In this document: positions 21,809-64,000 of the stretch, piece by piece
Layout: each line of letters opens with the position of its first letter
Numbering within the stretch: position 1 is the first letter of the stretch
Assembly: GCF_006345805.1 (NCBI RefSeq)
Contig: NC_043003.1
Coordinates: forward strand, 88,350,001-88,414,000
Direction of reading: 5' to 3'
Source: Octopus sinensis
Taxonomy: Eukaryota
DNA length: 64,000 nt
The notes under the pieces: model-generated
What the model saw: the letters and a program-made list of their open reading frames with translations, nothing else
What the model was told of the DNA's origin: nothing
Databases searched by the model: none
Program-made: the position numbers and the translations under genes

Positions 21809-21981
21809 GTATGTTTATATATTTGTTTTGCAAGATTCTTGATGTGAAATCGTGTGTTGAAACAGACGTATTTAGGAATGGTCATTTTGCCAGTTTAGCC
21901 AATAAAAACACATGCACTATATATTTGGTGTTAATTTGCTTCAGCGTTATTTATTTTTTACATTAATCTTCATCTTATTTT

Positions 21982-22025
21982 GGCCAGAGTTCTTTCGTCA
22001 CACTTCTGTGACCTCATCAGTGGTC
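21982..22025 (-). ncRNA. Hammerhead motif in the inverted pLTR of PLE-D
   Basis: Reverse-complement copy of 23619-23662. Confidence 0.65.
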
Positions 22026-22335
22026 CTTTGCTTTCTTCTTTCTTATTTGTGTGTCTCTCCTTACTAACGGTCAGCCATTTTGTATTCCTATTCTATGTGT
22101 CTTCATTTGCGCATGTGTATATTTCTATGTGTGTCTATGTTTAGTTAGTGTGTGTGTGGGGGGAAGTGCCTGTAATATTTGTGTCTCTTGTTTATACATG
22201 TTTGTGTAATTTGTTTTTGTTTATTTTTATTTTGTTCAAGTGTTTACACCTACTTATTATTATTATTTTTTTTGGTTGTATTCAGTTAAATTTTTTTTTT
22301 AATGTATATAGTTATTTACTTACTATGCCAAACCT

Positions 22336-23256
22336 ATGGACTCCAAATACTTGATCCACCAGAACTCAACTATCGCGGACAATGCCAAATTCAATATTTT
22401 GGTGGCAGACCCTGTCAAAATAATGCGAAATGTGTCCCACATGTGCAAGCCTACAGAGTTAAAGAGACACATACAACATTTCGTTCACTGCATGCAGTTC
22501 TCAGGTTACAGCCATAAAGAAAGGATCAGAGTATACAAAGGAGCCACGAAGAAATTTTATACTATTTTATGTAATGATAGGAATGTGATTTGCCCACTCT
22601 ATAGGAACAAGTCATGGAATACTATTGAAAGGACTAAGAAGAAAATAGGGAAGGCCAACTCTTGGTATGATAGCCACAAATACCAGAGTGTCATGTTCGT
22701 CGACACCACCCCTAGAGGCGAACTGGCGTACCGCTTTAGAAGGGCCCTAGACAAACTTAAGCTAAGGATTAAGGTTGTTGAAAAGCCAGGCAACCCTATA
22801 AAATCCCTAATCGGTAGAACCTATCCTTTTAGTAGAATCCCCTGTACGGAGAGGAACTGTACTGTGTGTAGATTTAGTCCACAAACAAACTGTAAAGCCA
22901 GAAATGTAGTCTATAGTATAAGATGTATAGAGGGACGATGCAGTAACAAGACAACGACATACGTAGGGGAAATGGCATGGAGCATAGGAGAGCGAGTAAA
23001 TGACCATTGGAGAGAACTTAAGGAAGGAAAGAGCTCATCGGTTCTGTACCAACACACCGAGCAGGAACACGGGGGTTCACTCAACAACATAGAAGTTAAA
23101 ATCTTGTCCACACATAGAACAGACGCAACAATCAGACAAATTACGGAAGCTACACACATAATAGAAGATAAACTTAGCCTGAATAGGAAACTTGAATGGA
23201 ACACTAGCACACACCCCCAACACACCACAACATATGACAGAAGAAGATCCCCATAA
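22336..23256 (+). pseudogene. PLE ORF C-terminal part (thumb/linker plus GIY-YIG endonuclease), open for 306 codons
   Basis: CTERNCTVC linker, NVVYSIRC..TYVGEMAWSIGERVNDH (GIY-YIG), RQITEA..LNRKLEW. No RT core. Confidence 0.85.
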
Positions 23257-23618
23257 ACTGGTAACAATATAAACAAAATTAAAAACATAATAAAATACAC
23301 ATAAATAAACAAATGGAAGTAAATAACTATATACATTAAAAAAAAGAAAAGAAAATTTAACTAAATACGACAAAAAAAAAATAATAAGTAGGTGTAAACA
23401 CTTGAACAAAATAAAAATAAACAAAAACAAATTACACAAACGTGTATAAACAGGAGACACAAATATTACAGGTACTTCCCCCCACACACTAACTAAACAT
23501 AGACATACATAGAGGTATATGCATGTGCAAATGAAGACACATAGAATAGGAATACAGAATACAAAATGGCTGACTGTTAGTAAGGAGAGACACACAAATA
23601 AGAAAGAAGAAAGCAAAG

Positions 23619-23662
23619 GACCACTGATGAGGTCACAGAAGTGTGACGAAAGAACTCTGGCC
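23619..23662 (+). ncRNA. Hammerhead motif in the 3' pLTR of PLE-D
   Basis: GACCA-CTGATGA-G-GTCACA gaag TGTGAC-GAAAG-AA-CTC-TGGCC. Confidence 0.68.
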
Positions 23663-23808
23663 GAAATAAGATGAAAATTAATGTAAAAAATAAATAATGC
23701 TGAAGCAAAGTAACACCAAATATATAGTGCATGTGTTTTTATTGGCTAAACTGGCAAAATGACCATTCCTAAATACAACAACATATACATATATATATAT
23801 GTATGTAT

Positions 23809-24521: not shown

Positions 24522-24775
24522 ATGTTTAAGAGATGAGGAATTATGTTCATTATTTACATTTGACGGATATTTGCCCTCATCTTGTTTGTTGTTAACACAA
24601 TGTTTCAGCTGATATACCCTCCAGCCTTCATCAGGTGCCTTGGGAAATTTTGAACCTGGGTTCTCATTCCTAAAGTATTTTTCGATGTTGTTATTATTAT
24701 TATTACACAGGTCACTGCCTGGAATCAAATGCAGAATTTTGGGGTTAGTAGCCCGTGCTCTTAACCACTACGCCA
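24522..24775 (-). mobile_element. tRNA-head SINE family 3 carrying a hammerhead module (copy A)
   Basis: Head TGGCGTAGTGGTTAAGAGCACGGGCTACTAACCC..TTGATTCC, (AAT/AAC)n linker, HHR at 24594-24639. Confidence 0.8.
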
Positions 24776-24783
24776 CTGGCATA

Positions 24784-24883
24784 TGGCATAGTGGTTAAGA
24801 GCACGGACTACTAAGCCCAAGATTCCAAGCAGACTACTACTACTACCACCACCACCACCACCACCACCACCACCACCACCACC

Positions 24884-24949
<66 letters not shown>

Positions 24950-25095
24950 TTGAAAAATACCTTAGGAATGAGAACCCAGGTTTTAAATTTCCCCAAGACA
25001 CCTGATGAAGGCTGGAGGGTATATCAGCCGAAACGTGTTAACAACAAACAAGACGAGGACAAATATCTGTCAAATGTAAATAATGTAAATGATGA
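24784..25095 (+). mobile_element. tRNA-head SINE family 3 carrying a hammerhead module (copy B)
   Basis: Head TGGCATAGTGGTTAAGAGCACGGACTACTAAGCCC, expanded (TAC)(CAC)(CAA) linker, CTGATGA-A-GGCTG..CAGCC-GAAAC at 25002-25034. Confidence 0.8.
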
Positions 25096-25512
25096 ACAAA
25101 AATAGTTCTCTTTCCAGTTGAGATATCAACATAGAATACACTGTAAGGTGTTTGTTTCTTTGAATGTCATTAAGTTGATGGGGAACAAACCTATCCATCT
25201 TTTTGACTTCATGCATACAATTTTCTTCAAGTGTTGAGGAGTTGCAGGAGATGTCTGGAGCTCTGATCCGATTTTTCGGATAGTTGTTCTCAGATTTCAT
25301 TTAACCAAAGCATTGAATTCATCATGCCAAATAACTGATTTTGTTTTCCTCTTGGTTCATTTTTAAGGCTTTCATTTCCTGAATGAAATGCAGGAGAAAG
25401 GTTGTTTTCAGCCGATCTCCCTTGATACAATTATAAACATTATTATTAATTTAATGTATTAATTGCCTATAAACTTTTATAGCAAGCTGACTACTTGATA
25501 AAAATCATTATA

Positions 25513-27722: not shown

Positions 27723-30250
27723 TTATCATCATCATCGTTTAACGTCCGTTTTCCGCGCTAGCACGGGTTGGATAGTTTGACCGGGGTCTGGGAAGCCAGG
27801 GGCTGCACCAGGCTACAGTCTAATCTGGCAGCATTTCTACAGCTGGATGCCCTTCCTATAGCCAACCACTCCGCGAGTGTAGTGGGTGCTTTTTACGTGC
27901 CACCGGCATAGGTGCCAGGGGAGTCTGGCATCGACAACAATCGGTTGATGCTTTTAACGTGCCACTGGCACAGAAGCCAGTCGAGGCGGCGCTGGCATTG
28001 GCCACGTTCGGATGGTGCTTTTTATGTGCCACCGGCACAGGTATCACAACTACTATTTCCATTGATATTTATTTCGATGTTCATGTACTTGACTCAACAG
28101 GTCTCCTCAAGCACAGCGGGATGTTCTGGAATCCAAGGTACTTTGAATGGGCAGGGGCTATGCGGAGCTGGTGGAGGAAGCAGCCCGGGTCTTTGCAGTC
28201 ACAACATATCTCCAGAGATCTCGGTCCTTCGTCATTGCCTCAGTGAGACCCAGCGATCTGAGGTCATGCTTGACTACCTCATCCCATGTCTTCCTGGATC
28301 TAGCTCTCCTCCTGATACCTTCAACTGTTTGGGAGCAGCACTTCTTCACACATCCCTCCTCATCCATCCGCAGTACATGACCATACCATCGCAAGCGTCG
28401 CTCTTGCACACCACATCTGATGCTTCTTATGTCCAGCATTTCTCTCAGGGTGCTTACCCTCTGTCGTGCGCGCACACTGACATTGCACATCCAGCAGATT
28501 ATGCTAGCTTCATTTCTTTCAAGTCTACGCATGTCTTCCGCAGTCACGGCCCATGTTTCACTACCGTGAAGCATGGCATTTTGCACACATACATCATACA
28601 ATCTACCTTTCACTCTGAGCGAGAGACCCTTTGTCGCCAGTAGGGGTAGGAGCTTTCTAAACTTTGCCCAGGCTATTCGTATTCTAGTGGTGACACACTC
28701 TGAGCATCCACCTCCACTACTAACTTGGTCACCCAGGTAGCGGAAACTATCAACTACTTCTAGTTTCTCCCCCTGGAGTGTGATGGAATCTGTTTTCTGA
28801 GTATCTGTGGTGTCTATTGTCCCTGGGCATCTGCTGCACATGAAAGCTATCTTATCAGTTAATTTCCCTTTGATGTTGCTGCACCTCTTATGCGTCCATA
28901 GCTTACACTGGGAACATCTTAAAGAGTTTCTACCTACACCTTTCCTACAGATCGAGCAGGGCCACCTGCCCGAGGGTGTGTGTGCTGAGTTCAACTTTCT
29001 GCTAACTATAACTTTGGTCTTTGCTACATTTACTCTAAGGCCCTTTGATTCTAACCCTTGCTTCCACACCTGAAATTTCTTTTCTAGTTCCGGTAGTGAT
29101 TCTGCTATGAGAGCCAGGTCTTCAGCATAGTGGAGCTCCCATGGGCAACCTGTTTTGAATTCCTCTGTTATTGCCTGGAGGACTATGATGAATAAAAGGG
29201 GACTGAGGGCTGAGCCTTGGTGTACACCTACTTCTACCCGGAATTCTTCACTATATTCGTTGCCAATTCTAACCTTGCTGACAGCCTCTCTGTATAGGGC
29301 CTTATTAGCCATTCGTCTCCAGTTTCCGCATCGGGCACCAGATAAGGGATCGGGGGACCCAGTCAAAGGCTTTCTCCAAGTCCACAAAAGCTATGTAGAG
29401 GGGTTTATCTTTAGCTAGGTACTTCTCCTGCAGTTGTCAGACCAGGAATATAGCATCAGTAGTGCTTCTACCCGGCACAAAACTGAACTGCATCTCATCT
29501 AAGCAAATTCTCTCCCTAATGAGATGGGTTATGACCCTCTCTGTGACCTTCATCACCTGATCTAACAGCTTAATACCCATGTAGTTATTTCTATCTAGAG
29601 CATCACCCTTACCCTTATAGCAGTTGACTATGGTGCTGCTACGCCAGTCATTGGGTATGACTCCATTATGCACTACCTGGTTTACAATGCAGGTGACTAG
29701 GCCATAGCCCACATAACCAGCTGTTTTAAGCATCTCAGCAGCGATTCCTGATGGGTCGGGGGCTTTACCTGGTTTCATACCCTTAATTGCCTTAATAACA
29801 AGGGAGCTGTCTATTCGGATAGCTGGTCCCTCTACTGGGTCAACATTTGGCAGGCTCTCCTCCTCCCATTCATTCTCCACATTTAGCAGTTTTTCATAAT
29901 GGCTTCTCCAAGCCTCTTTCTTTTCTCCAACATTAAAAGCAAGTGCCCCATCATCCATGCGGACACATTTCTCTCCTGTAACATCACTATTTTCTCTCAC
30001 ACACTGTCTAGCAATCCGAAATACCTCAGTTCTTTGGTCCTCACGTTGCTGGACATTGGCAAACTTCATCTTTTCTGCTACATCTTTGGCTATGTATACC
30101 TGCGCCCAACCTCCCTTTTGGCTACCTGGAACAGTTCCCTGCTACCCCCATCACTCCAGGCTTTCCAGGCCTGTTTCTTTGCTCTAATGGCTTTGTCTAC
30201 TGCACTATTCCACCACCACGTAACTCTAGGTCTGAAAGGGACTTTGCACC
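27723..30250 (-). mobile_element. RTE LINE, 5'-truncated, RT-PHD-thumb
   Basis: ORFs 29437-30069 and 28158-29387 (HQGSALSPLLF, HYAED, PHD); (GAT)n tail at about 27723. Confidence 0.93.
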
Positions 30251-31573: not shown

Positions 31574-31686
31574 CATAATAATAATTATTTGAGGGAATAT
31601 TATTCCTAACTTACAAGGTGAAATTCAATTTATAAATACTAAATCAAATTTAACAAAATATAATATATATATATATATATATATAT

Positions 31687-31923
31687 AAATTAGAAAAAAA
31701 CACCTTTTATCAATTCAAAATGAACAATTAAATTATACCATCTAGAAAATTACATATAAGAGAAATATTAAAATTAAAATAACAATAATATACTGATGAT
31801 TACTTAATCATCGGTATATTATCGTTATTTTAATTTTAATATTTCTCTTATATGTAATTTTCTAGATGGTGTAATTTAATTGTTCATTTTGAATTGATGA
31901 AAGGGGTTTTTTTTTCTAATTTT
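31687..31923. repeat. About 235-bp AT-rich palindrome, 2-nt spacer
   Basis: Arms 31687-31802 and 31805-31923 with a few mismatches. Confidence 0.9.
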
Positions 31924-32222
31924 TATATATATATTACATATATAAATATATATATATATAATATATATATATATATGATATATATATATATATGATATAT
32001 ATATATATCATATATATATATCATATATATATATATTATTATATATATGATATATATATGATATATGTACCAATTAAGGACTGAACACGAAAAGTGGACA
32101 GTCAACATGCTAGATATAGACGTCAAATCGCCATTCACCACAAAAGATTATGTTCTCAGATCAAACTCAACACAAAACCATAGCAATAAACAAGTGAAAA
32201 ATATACGAAATAAATAATTACC

Positions 32223-32284
32223 CATGTACTAATTAGTTTCAGCTGTTATTTTCCGCAAGGAAAACTGCAGCCATCATCAGCATG
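32223..32284 (-). ncRNA. Mirror copy of the hammerhead ribozyme
   Basis: Exact reverse complement of 32281-32342. Confidence 0.8.
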
Positions 32285-32342
32285 CTGATGATGGCTGCAG
32301 TTTTCCTTGCGGAAAATAACAGCTGAAACTAATTAGTACATG
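32281..32342 (+). ncRNA. Type I hammerhead ribozyme, intact core
   Basis: CATG-CTGATGA-T-GGCTG..TTTTCC ttgc GGAAAA..CAGCT-GAAAC-TAATTA-GTA-CATG. ACTAATTAGT is a 10-bp palindrome. Confidence 0.82.
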
Positions 32343-32884
32343 GATAATTATTTTATTTCGTATATTTTTCACTTGTTTATTGCTATGGTTTTGTGTTGAG
32401 TTTGATCTGAGAACATAATCTTTTGTGGTGAATGGCGATTTGACGTCTATATCTAGCATGTTGACTGTCCACTTTTCGTGTTCAGTCCTTAATTGGTATA
32501 TATAAATATTTTAATCTTCGGATTCTTTTTTAATATGCTAGACCACTGGTCTTAATTGATAAATATCAATTTCTACCCTTAATTAATTTTATATGATATA
32601 TGTATATCATATATATATTATATAGATATATCATATATATTTCATATATATATTATATATGTATATCATATATATATATATATCATATATATATCATATA
32701 TATATATATATATATATAATATATATATATATATATAGATATATATAGATGTATCATATATATATATATATATTTTATATATATATATATTATTTATTTA
32801 TTTATTATCATATATATATATTTATATCATATATATATTTTATATATATATTATTATTTATTTATTTATTTAATTAATTTATTT

Positions 32885-32990: not shown

Positions 32991-35900
32991 ATGTAGTTTC
33001 AGCTCATGAGCTGTGGCCATCTGGGACACCTGACAGGAAGAGATCCAGGTTTATTTTAAAGACATCAGCATCCACCCCATGCAGGTCTCTCAGGTCCTTC
33101 AGGAGGATATTGAAGAGCTGTGGACCTCTGAAGCTCAGGCTACCACAGTATCTTGTCCTACATCTTGATGGCAAATTTGGAGTCCTTGGCACTATGCAGT
33201 GGCGCCCAGTTCTAGCATTTGTGTAACTCTCGATGCCAAAGTTTGGGACAAGTCCTTGTAGGATCTTCCAGATGTATATTATGGCATATCTTTCTCGCCT
33301 ACGCTCTAAGGAATAGAGTCTTAATCTCTTGAGTCTTTTCCAGTAGCTTATTTGCTGCACAGAGGCTACCTTCATCGTGTAGCTTCGTTGGATCGCCTCA
33401 AGTTCTGTGATTAACTTGACACTGGATGGTGACCATAGCTGAGAGCAATAGTCAAAGTGGCTTAGGACAAGTGTCCTCCAGAGGACCATCATGGTTTCCT
33501 GGTCTCTTGTTCTAAAGGTTCTAAGAATACATCCGGTCAGCTGCCTACATTTCATTGCCAATTTAGCAACATGCACATGAAAGGTTGCATCATCACGCAT
33601 GTAAATATCCAGGTCTCGCACTGATTGTGCCTCTGGGATTGCAATCCCTCCAGGTCCAGTGTATTTATTGGGTATTGCATGATGATAGCACAAGGCTTGA
33701 AACTTTTCAGCATTGAATTGCATGCTATTCTTTTCAGCCCACTTGTATATTCTGTTCAGCTCACATTGCAGGTGCTTAGTGTCTTCAGGGTTCTGTATTG
33801 CCTGTGAAACTTTTGTATCATCTGCATAACTTGTGATCATGGCTCTCTGCGTGGCTGAGGGCATGTCTGAGAGGGCCATTATGAACAGTAGTGGTCCCAA
33901 AACAGTGCCCTGCGGAACACCGCTCACTATTTGCGTGTTAATGGAGGTGGCCCCATTGGCTACTACCACCTCACTTCTATCCTTCAGAAAGTCATGAAGC
34001 CATTCTCCCAATTCTCCAACTATGCCAAGATCACGCAGTTTGTGACATATCATTCCATGATCGACTTTATCATAGGCCTTTGCAAAGTCGAGATATATCA
34101 TTTCCACATTTGAGTGGTTGAGCAGTTGTTTCAGCACCCAGTCATAGTGTCGTAAGAGCTGAGTTAGGCAGTTCCTTCCTGGTCGGAAACCATGTTGGGT
34201 GTCAGGCAGCAAGTTATTTTCTTCAAGGAAGGTGATTAGTTTCCTTCTGACTATTCGTTCCATGACCTTGCTGATGTGTGAGGTGAGAGAGATAGGTCTG
34301 TAGTTCTTGGCCTCCACTCTGCTACCTCCTTTATGAATAGGGCATATTTTACCTTCCTTCAGTTTTCTTGGAAGTTTGCCAGTTGCAAGGAAGCTCTGAA
34401 AAAGAGACTGCAGTGGTTTTGCTAGGGCTCTCTTACATGCTTTTAGAAGGATTGCCGGAAATCCATCGGGGCCAGTAGCTGAGTTTGGGTTCATTTCATC
34501 TATAGCCCTTATTATATCGTCTTCCTTTATATTGATGTAATCAATCATCATTGCCTCATTTTTATATCTGCAGGGGTAAAGACGTCAGTTGGATTGCTGA
34601 CTTGAAAATGCCCTAGGGGTGGAGTGAAAATACTCTTTAGTATTTCGCTTATCCTCATTGGATTTCCTGAGTGTACCATCCTTTTCAAGGAGTGGCCCTA
34701 TCCTACAGTGCACCATAGCTGTTTCTTTGGCAAACTTGTAGAAAGCTCTGGGGTTAGATTTTAGGTTGTCTATAGACCAGGCTTCTTTGTCTGCTCTTTC
34801 TTTTTCATGGGAGAGTTGCAGACATTTTTCAATTTCCAACAGTTTTATTTTCAGGCGGGACTTTCCATTGCTTTCAATTTGTTTGGTTAGGCGATTTGAA
34901 ACTTTTGTACGCCGTCTCATAAGAATTTTCCTCTCTCTGGGGATTTTGTTCTTGTGTACAGTGGCCTTTCTCTCTGGGACACATTTGTAGCATATGGCTT
35001 GCATTACAGACATGAATTGTTGAAGTTTCACGTTGATGTCTGGCGAGGAGAGACATTCAGGCCAGTTTTGTTTGAGGATCTCTTTCTCAATTTGTTCCCA
35101 GTTTGCCTTATGGAAGTTCAAGCTGGAAAGATTCTGAGATTTTCTTGTAGACTGCATGTCTATGCTTTCCTTTGGCCCGTACATGGTCAGCTCTACCATG
35201 TTGTGATCCGAGAGTAGTGTCGGTATCACTTTCACATTATGGATGAGATCCATATTATTTGTGAAGCAGAGATCCAGTATGTTACCTGCCCTGGTTGGTT
35301 GGAGTATTATTTTCTCCATGTACAGAGTGTTGATGAGGTTCAGGAGGGACCTCCTCTGTCCTCGTTCGCATCGTGTCATTCCTGGGAGAGTAAGGCCCTC
35401 GGGCCATCTGACATTGGGCAGATTGAAGTCTCCCATAAGGAGTACATTTTTTGTGTTGTTCTAATGTGACTAGAACTTCTATTTTTATAAGGCAGTCTTC
35501 AAACTTGCCTACACCAAGTTGCCCTATATGTACAATTAGTGTGTCACACACCGAATTTGAGTATGACAAAAGGATCTGGGGTGTGAGGTCCTCGCGGATG
35601 TACATAGCAACTCCACCATGACTCCTTTCTTTTCTGTCAGTCCGTAATACAACATACTGTGGTATGTGTATTTCCACATCTGCTATGTCCAGTTTCAGGT
35701 GTGTTTCCGTAAGTGCTATGCAACAAGGTCTCCCAAGAAAGGGATTTTTGTCCTGTTACTGAGTGTTAGCAGTCCTCTGATGTTCAGTCGGGGCATCAAG
35801 GTGATGTGTGTGTTGTTGCCAGTGGTGTCCACCTTGGGTCTATTTGCTGTGGCGGTCTTGTGTATTGTGGACAGTCCCATCTGCGAGTTCGAGTTTGATG

Positions 35901-36990
35901 GAGCCAGGTTAGCTGCTGTACAATCTTTTGTGCCATGCACAAAAAAGATTCTTGTTCAGCAGCTGCCCTTTCAATAACATGTTGATGGTTTGTAACACGC
36001 ACTACATCTGCGTACCTCTGTTTTGGGGCAGGTGGTGCGTAGTCCTTTCCTTTTCCTTTTGGCAGTTGGTTTCTGCCCTGTTTCATGTTTAATTGGCAGG
36101 GTCTTTGGTGTGCAAGACAGCAGCCTGCACCTTCCTCTCCGTGCCAGCAGACATCTTTCAGGTAGAATTTACACATTCGTTTGTGCTGTCTCTTTCTATC
36201 CTTTTTGGTATATGGATAGTCAGGTTTGCTTCTATCCTTGGCTGTTTCATCTTTTGGTTTTGTCTGAGTTTTAGTTTTTCCTTCTTTGGCTGTTTCATCT
36301 TTTGTTTTTCTTTTAGTTTTTCCTTTTACTTCTTTTTTGGCTCTTTCATCTCCATGGTTTTGACTTTTGATGCTGGTAGGGGCACTTGCACTTGGGTTTA
36401 CTTCCCGGGCAGGTTTCTCACTTGAATCTTCTTTGTTGTCCTGGGTGTCTACCAAGTGGGGGTGACATCTTTCATTAGCACCCGTGCCTCCATCCTTGTC
36501 ATCTTTTGTTTGTTGTCAAAGGTGGCATCAAGCATGCTGATGTGGGATCTTATGAGTGCATAGGAGCGTATAAACTTCTGCTTCTTTAGCTCTATCTGTG
36601 CCAACGTCCTTGTGTATCCATTGCTCTTCAGCGCAGCTGTAATTACGTTGTTCGGACTATCTTCGTCGGTGTATCCCAGGCTCTCAAGAACAATGCCAAT
36701 TCCATGCTCCTCCAGGTTCTGAACATTTTTTTTTAGATATTTTATTTATTTATCTAATTATATTTAAAATTTAACAGTGTGATAGAGGGTAGAGAAGAAA
36801 TGGAGAAAGAAAGTGTCTATGTATTTAGAGAGAAGTGGAGAAGTGAAGAGACAGAGAAGGAGGTGTGAAGGAGAGAAGTGAAGAGACAGAGAAAAGGCGT
36901 GAAGGAGAGAAGTGAAGAGACAGAGAGAGAAAGAAATGAAAGAGAGGGGGTTAAGCAACAAATAAATATATATATATATATATATAGGAC
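32990..36990 (-). mobile_element. CR1/L2-group LINE family F, near full length, disrupted (5' UTR, ORF1, APE, RT)
   Basis: RT ORF 33004-34551 (YRPISLTS, YLDFAKAYD, PQGTVLGPLLF, YADD), APE 34585-35940, ORF1 35796-36727. Confidence 0.92.
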
Positions 36991-43069: not shown

Positions 43070-46000
43070 CAGGTACAAGATTTTCTGGGCAGGGAACACA
43101 GACGGGGTTGGGTGCGTGGGTATACTTCTTGCAGAGAAATGGGTTGATAAGGTAGTCGAAGTAGTCAGAGTATGTGACAGAATCCTTAAGATTAGACTAG
43201 TGCTTTATCATAGGTCAGCAACCATCATCTCGGCATATGCCCCTCAGTCGGGGCTACCAGAAGGACAGAAAGACCGATTCTATGACACCCTATTACAGAC
43301 TACCTCGTTGACAAATGACAGTGATCTTCTCTTTGTGGTAGGTGACTTCAATGGACATGTTGGACGGCATGTTGGGGGCTTCCACGGCATACGCGGGGGC
43401 CACGGTTTTGGCTCTCGCAATGAGGAGGGAACCAGACTGCTGGAGTTCTGCGATGCAAATGACCTCATGATTTGCAATACCAACTTCAGGAAACCCACCT
43501 CTCACCTAGTCACCAACCGTTCTGGCAGACACACTACCCAGATCGACTACATCCTCGCCAGAAAGAGGGAAAAAGGGCTGCTTATTAATGCTAAAACCTT
43601 CCCAGGCGAGGAATGTACCCCTCAACATAGATTAGTAGTTAGCGACTTCAGAATCAGGGCCAAATGGATGCCCAGAATAAGACCAGTTCGGAGGGGAAGA
43701 GTCTGGAAACTTAAAAATCCTGTAAATGGACGGAGATTTAGAGAAGTTCTACTCGAAGCTTTCGATGAAACAGAAGGGGATATAGCATCACATAATGTGG
43801 AAGCCAACTGGAGGTTTCTACGGGACAATCTGCTGAAAGCCACTGACCAGATCTGTGGATGGAGCAAAGTCCCATCTCGTCCCAGGGTAATGTGGTGGAG
43901 GAACAATGTTGTAGACAGGGCTATTAGAGACAAGAGACAGGCTTGGAAGGACTGGAGGAAAGACGGTAGTAGGGAATTGTATCAGACTGCGAAAAGAGAA
44001 GCTAGGAGACAGGTATATTTAGCTAGAGGGGAAGCAGATAAGAAAAAATTTGCCAATGTTCTGCGCCGTGAGGACCAAAGACTTGAGGTGTTTTGTGTTG
44101 CAAGACGGTGTGTGAGAGAGAATCGTGATGTGTTCGCATGGATGATGGTTCACTTGCGCTGAATGAGGATGCAAATAGATGCCACTATGAAAGATTGCTC
44201 AACAAAGAGAATGAATGGGATAAAGAGAGTCTGCCGAATGTCGACCCAATAGAGGGACCAGCTATCCGAGTTGACAGTTCCATGGTAGTTAAGGTAATTG
44301 GTAGCATGAAGACAGGGAAAGCCCCAGGCCCATCAGGAATTACTGCTGAGATGCTCAAAATATCTGGCAGTGTCGGCTATAGCCTAGTCACCCATATAGT
44401 TAACCAGGTGATACACGAAGGAGTCATACCCAATGACTGGTGTAGTAGCATAATAGTCAACTGCTACAAAGGTAAGGGTGACGCTCTTGATACAAGTAAT
44501 TACAGAGGTATCAAGCTGTTGGATCAGGTAATGAAGGTTACGGAAAGCGTCATAGCCCAACTGATTAGAGACAGAGTCAACCTAGACGAGATGCAGTTTG
44601 GTTTCGTGCCAGGGAAAAGCACCACTGATGCCATATTTCTGGTGAGACAGCTGCAGGAGAAATACCTAGCGAAAGATAAAACTCTGTACCTGGCTTTCGT
44701 TGACTTGGAGAAAGCCTTTGACAGGGTCCCCCGTTCCCTTATCTGGTAGTCAATGAGGAAACTAGGTATAGATGAATGGTTAGTGAGAGCTGTGTGTGTC
44801 ATGTACAGGGACGCTGTTAGTAAGGTGAGGGTTGGCAACAAGTACAGCAAAGAATTCTGGGTAGAGGTTGGGGTCCACCAAGGCTCAGTCCTCAGCCCCC
44901 TCCTATTTATCATAGTCCTCCAGGCAATAACAGAGGAATTCAAGACAGGATGCCCCTGGGAGCTCCTCTATGCTGATGACCTTGCTCTAATTGCTGAATC
45001 ACTATCGGAACTCGAGGAGAAGTTTCAGGTGTGGAAGCAAGGATTAGAATCGAAGGGCCTTAGAGTCAATCTAGCTAAAACCAAAGTCCTAATAAGTAGG
45101 AAACTAGACAAATTTCAAACGCCATCAGGTAGATGGCCCTGCTTGATCTGTAGAAAAGGCGTAGGTAGGAACTCTATAAGATGCACCAAGTGTAAGCTAT
45201 GGACACATAAGAGGTGCAGCAATGTCAAAGGAAGGCTAACTAGGAACATAGTTTTTGTATGTGGCAGATGCTCTGGTGCAATAAACACTGAAAGTGCGCA
45301 GAGACCATCTTCCGCCACATTCCAGGGAGAAAAACTTAAAATAGTTGATAGTTTCCGTTACCTAGGTGACCAAGTCAGTAGCGGGGGTGGGTGTGCCGAA
45401 AGTGTAACTGCTAGAGTAAGAATAGCCTGGCAAAGTTGAGAGAGCTCTTACCTCTGCTGGTGACAAAAGGCCTCTCGCTCAGAGTAAAAGGCAGACTGTA
45501 TGACGCATGTGTGCGAACAGCCATGCTACATGGCAGTGAAACATGGGCCGTAACTGCTGAGGATATGCATAAGCTTGCAAGAAATGAAGCCAGTATGCCC
45601 CGTTGGATGTGTAATGTCAGTGTTCATACCAGACAGAGTGTAAGTGCCTTGAGAGAAAAGTTGGACCTAAGAAGCATCAGATGTGGTGTGCAAGAGAGGC
45701 GTCTACGCTGGTATGGACACGTAGTAAGAATGGATGAAGATAGTTGTGTGAAAAAGTGCCACACCCTGGCAGTTGAGGGAACCTGTGAAAGAGGCAGACC
45801 CAGGAAAACCTGGGACGAGGTGGTGAAGAACGACCTTCGCTCTTTAGGTCTCACCAAGGAAATGACCAGAGACCGAGACCTTTGGAAGTATGCTGTGCGC
45901 GAGAAGACCCGGCTGGACAAGTGAGGCCATAACCCATGGCCCCTACCTGGGACGTAGTCAGTCCACCTCCGCATACCTTCCTTTTTGGGATACATATCTC

Positions 46001-61305: not shown

Positions 61306-61698
61306 TTGCTGCTGCCGTTCCGTATCTTAATGCTTCAATGCCTGGGCCCTTGTCTCCCGGGATTCAGGATAGCTGTGTAGTGCCCATTGGATTGCTACAG
61401 AGGAATTACCAAGAAGACATACGAATTTCAAGATTCTCATACTAAAGTATATACAATTTTCTAAACTAACTACATGAACTATACTGGAATACAAGATAAT
61501 ATAATGGATTTTGAGAATGAATATTATGGATTATTGCAGAAGAATAATCAAGGAAATATATATGGATTTAAAGACTCTCATCAAAAGTAGTAATTTTTAA
61601 TTTTTAATTTACCTTTGAAACAAACACCATTTTACAATTTTACTTCAAATCTTTAAAAAAACTATCATTCGATATATTATACAATATTCATATTTTAT

Positions 61699-61788
61699 AT
61701 CTCTGAAGAGCAGAAGGGTTGTCTATAAACGCTTATCAATACAGGATTTCATTATAGGGACAATTCTTCTGCGAAACGATCGTAAGAT
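61699..61788 (+). ncRNA. Type I hammerhead ribozyme, intact core, long stem II
   Basis: ATCT-CTGAAGA-GCAGAAGGGTTGTC..GACAATTCTTCTGC-GAAAC-GATC-GTA-AGAT. Confidence 0.82.
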
Positions 61789-62093
61789 GCTTAAATAATT
61801 AATTCAAAATTTTTAAATTATGAAATTTATTTTATACATTATATTTATATTTTTATACTTATTTATACATATTTTTAATACAGTAATTTCTTTCACACGG
61901 GTTATGAGGAGTTTGGATATAGATCTTCTTTATTAATAATAATAATATATTATTAAAAAATATCTGTATATATCGCTCGTATTAAATATATAAATACTTT
62001 AATAGTATTAATATTTTTATACAAGAGAACACTCAATATAAATTCAGTATAAAATATTCTTATTGAATATATTTACCTAAAGATTTATATATA

Positions 62094-63214: not shown

Positions 63215-63297
63215 GGACCTGAAGAGTGACTATATTTAAATTGAATTGATTTTAATGTTATCAGTTTGAAAATATAGCCACGAAACACATGTAGTCC
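63215..63297 (+). ncRNA. Type I hammerhead ribozyme, intact core
   Basis: GGAC-CTGAAGA-GTGACTATATTT..AAATATAGCCAC-GAAAC-ACAT-GTA-GTCC. Confidence 0.78.
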
Positions 63298-63480
63298 TTT
63301 TACCAATTATATACTTTTTATTTATTATTTTGTACTTTACTCAATTATTGGTATATGTTTTATTGTATATTTAATTTTTTTCTGTATGGCATAATTTAAT
63401 CAGATCAATGTTATTTCATTGTTGAATTGATAAAAGGTGTTTTTTTTCTAATTTATACACACACGCCCACACACATACAT

Positions 63481-64000
63481 GGGGCCAGACAGAGCTGGCA
63501 AACGGCCACGAACGGATGGTGCTTTTACGTGCCACCGACATGGGGCCAGACAGAGCTGGCAAACAGCCATGAACGGACGGTGCTTTTACGTGTCACCGGC
63601 ACGGGGCCAGGCGAGGCTGGCAACGAACACAAAGCATCATCCGTTTGTGTTCGTTGCCAGCCTCGCCTGGCCCCGTGCCGGTGACACGTAAAAGCACCGT
63701 CCGTTCATGGCCGTTTGCCAGCTCTGTCTGGCCCCGTGTCAGTGGCACGTAAAAGCACCATCTGTTCGTGTCCGTTTGCCAGCTCTGTCTGGCCCCGTGT
63801 CGGTGGCACGTAAAAGCACCATCCGTTCATGTCCGTTGCCAGCCTCGGCTGGCCTCCGTGCCGGTGACACGTAAAAGCACCGTCCGTTTTTGGCCGTTTG
63901 CCAGCTCTGTCTGGCCCCGTGTCGGTGGCACGTAAAAGCACCATCCGTTCGTGTCCGTTGCCAGCATCGCCTGGCCCCGTGCTGGTGACACGTAAAAGCA
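63481..64000. repeat. About 61-bp RTE-UTR-derived tandem array with an inversion point at about 63638
   Basis: Unit ..gtggcacgtaaaagcaccatccgttcgtg..; orientation flips across the hairpin ggcaacgaacacaaa / tttgtgttcgttgcc. Confidence 0.88.

Follow-up and report, generated by a model that had tools for sequence, protein, structure and literature searches.

The locus considered here, in the genome of Octopus sinensis, raises the question of how a long palindrome devoid of any spacer, with a hammerhead ribozyme motif on each strand at its very centre, came into being, and whether it is a mobile unit in its own right or a by-product of retrotransposition. In the window (the whole stretch of DNA analyzed, 64,000 nucleotides), self-comparison reveals two arms that are reverse complements of each other, with the axis of symmetry between 32282 and 32283 in the hexamer GCATGC (32280–32285); the coordinates of the features are collected in Table 1. 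The element-derived core of the palindrome spans ~32068–32498, the outer 6 nt are TA-rich and ambiguous, and beyond 32062 and 32504 the symmetry is gone. The original prediction of a spacerless palindrome at 32068–32498 with about two differences between its arms was accurate on both counts: in this interval the arms differ by exactly one substitution (32221 C facing 32344 A) and one 1-nt indel (an additional T in the right arm near 32354), and a third mismatch, 32067/32499, falls within the TA-rich edge. Chance cannot account for 99% identity over arms of ~215 nt. A whole-window scan for palindromes of complex sequence with a spacer of no more than 6 nt returned only two, this one and its neighbor P1, all other near-spacerless palindromes in the window being (TA)n tracts. 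No third copy of the arm was found in the 64 kb with blastn or nhmmer, a 77-aa open frame running through the arm had no words in common with any protein, and no ORF (RT/GIY-YIG) of a Penelope-like element (PLE), a type of retrotransposon, adjoins the palindrome.

Table 1. Positions of the palindrome, its candidate hammerheads, and related features in the window.
Feature	Positions	Strand	Remarks
Spacerless palindrome, whole	32062–32504		about 440 bp; arms 99% complementary; one substitution, one indel, one edge mismatch
Left arm	32062–32282	− (sense)	one unit (hammerhead + ~160 nt); 3′ end at left outer edge
Right arm	32283–32504	+ (sense)	unit type identical to that of left arm; 3′ end at right outer edge
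Central CATG, within GCATGC	32281–32284		symmetry axis and common helix I 5′ strand of both hammerheads
PLE-type minimal hammerhead (candidate)	32281–32342	+	
Helix I 5′ strand, CAUG	32281–32284	+	
CUGAUGA box	32285–32291	+	
Extra U between A9 and 10.1	32292	+	
Helix II, GGCUG..CAGCU	32293–32324	+	closing pair G·U
GAAA box	32325–32328	+	
Helix III, ACUAAUUAGU	32328–32337	+	10 nt, self-complementary
A17	32338	+	predicted cut after 32338; GUA = 32336–32338
Helix I 3′ strand, CAUG	32339–32342	+	
Mirror hammerhead (candidate)	32284→32223	−	CUGAUGA 32280→32274; GAAA 32240→32237; A17 32227; helix I 3′ strand 32226→32223
Predicted cut site to unit 3′ end	32339–32498	+	160 nt; mirror 32226–32068 on −
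Left flank microsatellite, (TA)n/(ATATATGAT)n	31930–32061		presumed target
Right-hand microsatellite	32590–32870		same type as left; runs into A/T-rich tail of minus-strand LINE (ORF end 33004)
LINE	33004–36455	−	APE endonuclease and RT domains (Exo_endo_phos_2, RVT_1)
P1, near-spacerless palindrome	31686–31921		2-nt centre CT; 128 bp upstream of the palindrome
Sister copy of P1 unit	63215–63454		single, non-palindromic; minimal hammerhead 63215–63297; 161 nt from cut site to end
Locus C, 5′-truncated PLE + inverted copy	21868–23776		
Locus C ORF	22336–23256		GIY-YIG-type endonuclease
Locus C hammerhead	23624–23657		~120 nt from 3′ end
Locus C inverted copy	21868–22322		more severely 5′-truncated; head-to-head, directly upstream; own hammerhead 22020→21987
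Locus B	~24540–25100		older, degenerate head-to-head pair of SINE-like units
Solitary minimal hammerhead	61698–61789		CUGAAGA; 12-bp helix II; palindromic helix III ACGAUCGU; 5-bp helix I
GC-rich 61-bp tandem satellite, non-PLE	63472–64000		directly after the 63-kb element and a (CA)n tract; runs off window end

Both hammerhead cores read outward from the axis, one per strand, and the catalytic boxes are present (C3-U-G-A-N-G-A9, G12-A-A, A15.1-U16.1, and a position 17 other than G). Helix II is composed of 5 bp, an internal loop, and a further 6–7 bp, with UUUUCC/GGAAAA as the inner hairpin. The unpaired U32292, the long helix II, and the CAUG/CAUG helix I are traits of PLE minimal hammerheads, which in metazoans have one unpaired nucleotide separating A9 from 10.1, an extended helix II, a helix I of 4–5 bp, and a palindromic 15.2–16.2/loop 3 (PMC4209133). 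The core (CUGAUGA/GAAA/UH) and the palindromic helix III are likewise the same as in that class, whereas the G·U at 10.1–11.1 and the internal loop in helix II set the present motif apart. Its opposite-strand copies are 0 bp apart and have helix I nucleotides in common, unlike the published opposite-strand pairs lying 100–700 bp from each other (PMC4209133). The assignment of the motif to the PLE-type minimal hammerheads, with self-cleavage as a predicted property, is thus supported by its sequence.

Motif inspection bore out the proposed anatomy, i.e., two hammerheads sharing the axial CATG, as well as the proposed position of the predicted cut, after 32338, where the motif layout places A17. 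The term "intact" applies to the catalytic boxes but not to the whole motif: the conserved G10.1–C11.1 closing pair is replaced by G·U (CAGCU instead of CAGCC), and CA (32281–32282), half of the helix I 5′ strand, is contributed by the opposite arm. The G·U could stem from a CpG-to-TpG change predating the duplication; the CCG→CTG form is also present in decayed-looking hammerhead copies elsewhere.

Hammerhead-like patterns are far more frequent in the window than expected, with four occurrences of CTGATGA..GAAAC vs. 0.12 expected and five matches to a fuller, relaxed descriptor vs. 0.1 expected, to which inspection adds more. Rfam returned no hammerhead match either for the whole window at the gathering threshold or for the locus (70 nt alone) at E ≤ 10. 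This negative result is uninformative, since the same models also miss the hammerhead of locus C, the bona fide PLE of the window, so the class is not covered by them. The Rfam matches obtained (MIR8742, Phe_leader, and others) reflect the long hairpin only and were discarded. A pattern scan of metagenomes yielded 120 DNA stretches (L001–L120), none of them related to the palindrome unit; these comprised bacterial and phage(-like) type I hammerheads with a long helix III in gut metagenomes and PLE-like minimal copies (GAAAC-AUGUA) in termite-gut metagenomes, the latter being probably host DNA. According to the same scan, CUGAUGA-U-GGCUG..CAGCC-GAAAC, with the extra U after A9, is a widespread natural hammerhead core.

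The predicted RNA folding suggests how such a motif could operate. The minimum-free-energy (MFE) fold of the hammerhead monomer is not a hammerhead (−17.8 kcal/mol vs. −10.9 kcal/mol for the hammerhead fold), whereas two sense copies are predicted to cofold into a double hammerhead with a 10-bp intermolecular helix III (−41.4 vs. 2 × −17.8 kcal/mol). Hence, the ribozyme is predicted to need a second sense copy for the active double hammerhead. Cleavage by PLE minimal hammerheads is known to be weak and to require either dimers or the protein of the element (PMC4209133, PMC11167929). For the solitary hammerhead at the far end of the window, the predicted MFE fold of the dimer is also a double hammerhead. 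In the palindrome, no single transcript can harbor two sense copies, because they reside on opposite strands; an RNA spanning the axis is predicted to form a single ~220-bp hairpin (−378 kcal/mol) burying both cores, so it would be a plausible substrate for RNAi or ADAR, not a self-cleaver.

These folds bear directly on the suggestion that the palindrome propagates as such, either as hairpin-shaped mobile DNA (MITE/foldback) or as a functional ambisense or hairpin-primed retrozyme. The long perfect inverted arms, the TA-rich flanks compatible with a TA duplication, and the same ribozyme encoded on both strands speak for it. The unit also resembles the metazoan non-LTR retrozymes (PMC7229834; Li et al. 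2026 bioRxiv 10.64898/2026.07.22.740005) in that it is short (~220 bp), rich in AT, and non-coding, has a type I hammerhead, and probably depends on PLEs. Retrozymes, however, are direct tandem repeats with canonical loop–loop hammerheads and release circular monomers, and direct repeats are needed for the two cuts that free a monomer (PMC7229834); the palindrome is an inverted pair with a minimal hammerhead and would afford at most one cut per transcript. The "ambisense retrozyme-like unit" of the original prediction is therefore disfavored: each transcript would combine one sense and one antisense copy in the core-burying hairpin, and direct copies are absent from the window. As mobile hairpin DNA, the palindrome lacks a second copy in the window, and the P1 family occurs as a non-palindromic single unit (63215–63454). 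Altogether, propagation as a palindrome, whether as DNA or as a retrozyme, is very improbable. In a specific version of it, transcripts running outward from the axis would be two identical hammerhead RNAs that dimerize in trans via helix III and cleave, and hairpin- or self-primed reverse transcription, always folding at the helix I CATG, would regenerate the copies. This version appears extremely improbable; if true, it would constitute a so far undescribed architecture, an "inverted retrozyme".

In the original prediction, snap-back priming was placed at the palindromic CATG of the axis, and stems I and III were both described as self-complementary. This holds for helix III (ACUAAUUAGU) and for the CAUG 3′ strand of helix I, whereas the axial CATG is self-complementary by construction. 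As the centre of any perfect palindrome has this property, it was rejected as evidence in itself. The only informative point is that the helix I 3′ strand is itself palindromic, with a 1/16 chance of being so. The hammerhead cut site does not define the axis either, since it is located 55 nt away from it. Palindromic tetramers number 17 per arm, or roughly one per 13 nt, and the other inverted junctions are placed differently: in P1 the junction follows the ribozyme cut by 45 nt on the downstream side, and in locus C it falls inside the ORF/3′UTR. Thus, the placement of the axis at helix I looks incidental, and the view of its CATG as a special fold site is not upheld.

The neighboring loci provide more insight into the origin of the palindrome. 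The homologues of the locus C ORF begin at the RT motif YVDD and have in common a C-terminal domain with Cys/His and Y..GET..R..EH; only one of them reaches Pfam GIY-YIG (3.7e-5). The locus is therefore taken to be a 5′-truncated canonical PLE. Pfam gave nothing for the ORF itself, and the PDB profile search with the endonuclease gave only matches to histone H2B, dismissed as spurious. A contig with a homologous PLE fragment (L121) harbored no hammerhead box. The two arms of locus C, flanked on the right by a (TA)n tract, are unequal in length, and both include the 3′ end of the element, with 84–99% identity, and 99% in the outer 88 nt. Unequal arms that both possess the 3′ end imply two separate cDNAs, so locus C is taken to show that two-cDNA events occur in this genome.

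P1 is a head-to-head pair of 5′-truncated copies of the element found singly at 63215–63454. Its outer ends lie exactly where the sister copy has its 3′ terminus (...TTTTTTTCTAATTT), and all three copies end in this way beside different microsatellites; hence, the outer ends of P1 are true 3′ termini of the element. In the palindrome, the candidate 3′ terminus at the outer end of the arm is ...CCTTAATTGGTA; the distance from cut site to end, 160 nt, is comparable with the 161 nt of the unrelated hammerhead-bearing element 63215–63454, the respective distance in locus C being ~120 nt. A CTGATGA box reading inward is found 3 nt from the P1 axis and may be there by chance. Each unit of locus B combines a microsatellite with a tRNA-like head (GGCRTAGTGGTTAAGAGCACGG) and a box resembling a hammerhead, CTGATGA-A-GGCTG..CAGCY-GAAAC, which is probably inactive because both arms have G at position 17. 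No tRNA was called in locus B by ARAGORN, and its SINE-like units are reminiscent of the Schistosoma Sm-alpha SINE. Overall, the head-to-head geometry with outward 3′ ends is common to four PLE-related loci in 64 kb.

The sister loci are also relevant to the possibility that the palindrome is an artefact of sequencing or assembly, for instance a long read that folded back into a chimera or an inverted repeat that was joined wrongly. Tandem and inverted PLE structures are known to trouble assemblies (PMC8557442), and one of the two arm differences is a change in homopolymer length, a typical long-read error. By contrast, the palindrome has an internal position, the flanking sequences on its two sides are unique and unlike each other, there is a transition between its arms, and the arms of its sister structures have diverged as in real aged loci (91–94% identity in P1, 84–99% in locus C, and ~80–88% in locus B). 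We regard an artefact as improbable.

The palindrome resides in an AT-rich microsatellite. On the right there is TATATA, the microsatellite resumes at 32590, and the 86 bp at 32505–32590 match nothing else in the window. PLE insertions are expected to have a target-site duplication and, optionally, a tail of 30–40 bp; with flanks of low-complexity TA, a duplication is unreadable. The reverse transcriptase of the LINE further to the right has its best homologue in Argonauta hians (62% identity), an exact look-up of the LINE ORF gave no record, and the A/T-rich microsatellite tail of this LINE appears to be the target that received both palindromes. Other RT/endonuclease fragments are present at 28158–29387 and 43116–44162.

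Such a context suggests yet another route, a duplication at the DNA level, whereby an existing single insertion would be mirrored after a break in the AT microsatellite by resection, intrastrand annealing at a short inverted repeat, and fill-in, with no reverse transcriptase involved. It accords with the break-prone nature of (TA)n tracts and with the presence of two palindromes 128 bp apart within one microsatellite. In addition, the non-PLE 61-bp satellite flips its orientation at 63633–63644 (162-nt arms, 95% complementary, 10-nt spacer), so inverted structures are not exclusive to PLE material here. However, the mirror symmetry ends at the element boundary on both sides of P1 and within ~6 nt of it in the palindrome, which should be rare for a random break, and the head-to-head arrangement with outward 3′ ends recurs at the four PLE-related loci. 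A DNA-level origin is therefore distinctly unlikely.

The geometry of the palindrome fits an origin by reverse transcription: the sense strands diverge, the 3′ ends point outward, microsatellite is present on both sides, and each arm has the size of a pseudo-LTR (pLTR). Our favored reading, held tentatively and at somewhat less than an even chance, is that the arms are two 3′-terminal tails of a PLE, or of a PLE-dependent element, generated by target priming on two strands and annealed in register. Each arm would correspond to the 3′-terminal ~220 bp of a PLE, or of a non-autonomous RNA copied by a PLE enzyme, with the minimal hammerhead followed by ~160 nt up to the start point of PLE reverse transcription. 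The PLE RT-endonuclease would cut both strands of the AT-rich microsatellite, cDNA synthesis would be primed from each 3′-OH at the same start site of the template, and two identical antisense cDNAs would extend toward one another. They could pair only at a self-complementary sequence, so annealing in register at CATG and mutual fill-in would give a perfect head-to-head palindrome whose 5′ truncation lies immediately upstream of the ribozyme. The two arms would be truncated equally for the same reason, since identical strands have no other kind of site at which to pair. The product would probably be dead on arrival.

Published observations on PLEs are in line with this scenario. Their insertions often carry an inverted 5′-truncated copy at the 5′ end and prefer microsatellites (PMC8557442); in Adineta vaga, head-to-head inverted pLTRs of ~180–220 bp with junction palindromes were read as a result of self-priming (PMC3846280). 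PLE protein, when purified, cuts both strands of the DNA and extends them, favors AT-rich DNA, and begins reverse transcription on either strand at one and the same internal site, about 90 nt past the hammerhead cut; two-strand priming has been demonstrated in vitro only, for a lizard element (PMC11167929). Against the favored origin stand the lack of an adjoining PLE ORF and of any other arm copy in the window, so that the 5′ and 3′ limits of the unit are putative for this family.

The equal truncation of the arms is explained equally well by snap-back self-priming, in which a single PLE cDNA would reach CATG, its 3′ end would fold onto itself or onto a short palindrome already present, and the cDNA would copy itself back to the outer end, whereupon the free end would be joined to the other side of the break. 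Exact symmetry would be automatic in this case. The centre of P1, TTA-CT-TAA (TTAC as in the unrearranged sister copy), resembles 3-nt fold-back priming, and self-priming was inferred by Arkhipova et al. from palindromes at inverted pLTR junctions (PMC3846280). The PLE hammerhead, the head-to-head geometry, the microsatellite, and the PLE in the window thus lend credence to the earlier proposal of snap-back during PLE reverse transcription; what weakens it is the hairpin of one strand with a loop of 0–2 nt, which is sterically implausible. Moreover, self-copying should enter the flanking target DNA, whereas the symmetry ends within ~6 nt of the unit end, the arms of P1 end exactly at the element terminus, and the unequal arms of locus C cannot be made by snap-back. 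We consider snap-back rather unlikely on balance and continue to prefer priming on both target strands.

An inverted segment within one insertion is also produced by L1 twin priming (LINE-1 5′ inversions), with the second target strand as a primer. In twin priming, the parts joined come from different stretches of one RNA and nothing is duplicated, whereas both arms of the palindrome represent one and the same 3′-terminal segment.

Most likely, then, the palindrome is a PLE-derived inverted pair with PLE minimal hammerheads. It has in common with the known PLE inverted pairs (Evgen'ev & Arkhipova; PMC3846280; PMC8557442) the head-to-head orientation, 5′ truncation, arms of ~200-bp pLTR size, a hammerhead inside the repeat, a junction palindrome, and a microsatellite or AT-rich target. 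It differs in that both copies are truncated at the same nucleotide with no ORF copy attached, so that a single perfect palindrome makes up the entire insert (a "solo" inverted pair), and in its host, an octopod cephalopod. Head-to-head inverted pLTRs with palindromic junctions, microsatellite targeting, and the self-priming hypothesis have all been described for PLEs already; hence, the initial idea of a PLE reverse-transcription product was reasonable and not new. Slightly unusual are the perfect symmetry without an ORF copy and the two ribozymes sharing four nucleotides.

Differing at only two positions between its arms, the palindrome represents a clean, young natural example of a PLE hallmark. 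Together with its three sister loci in 64 kb, it displays both symmetric and asymmetric head-to-head products with outer ends at true element termini. Such loci are the in vivo footprint to be expected if the PLE enzyme primes both target strands, an activity so far seen only in vitro. Palindromes of this kind confound repeat annotation and assembly, and the long, perfect hairpins formed by the RNAs they encode could enter RNAi or A-to-I editing.
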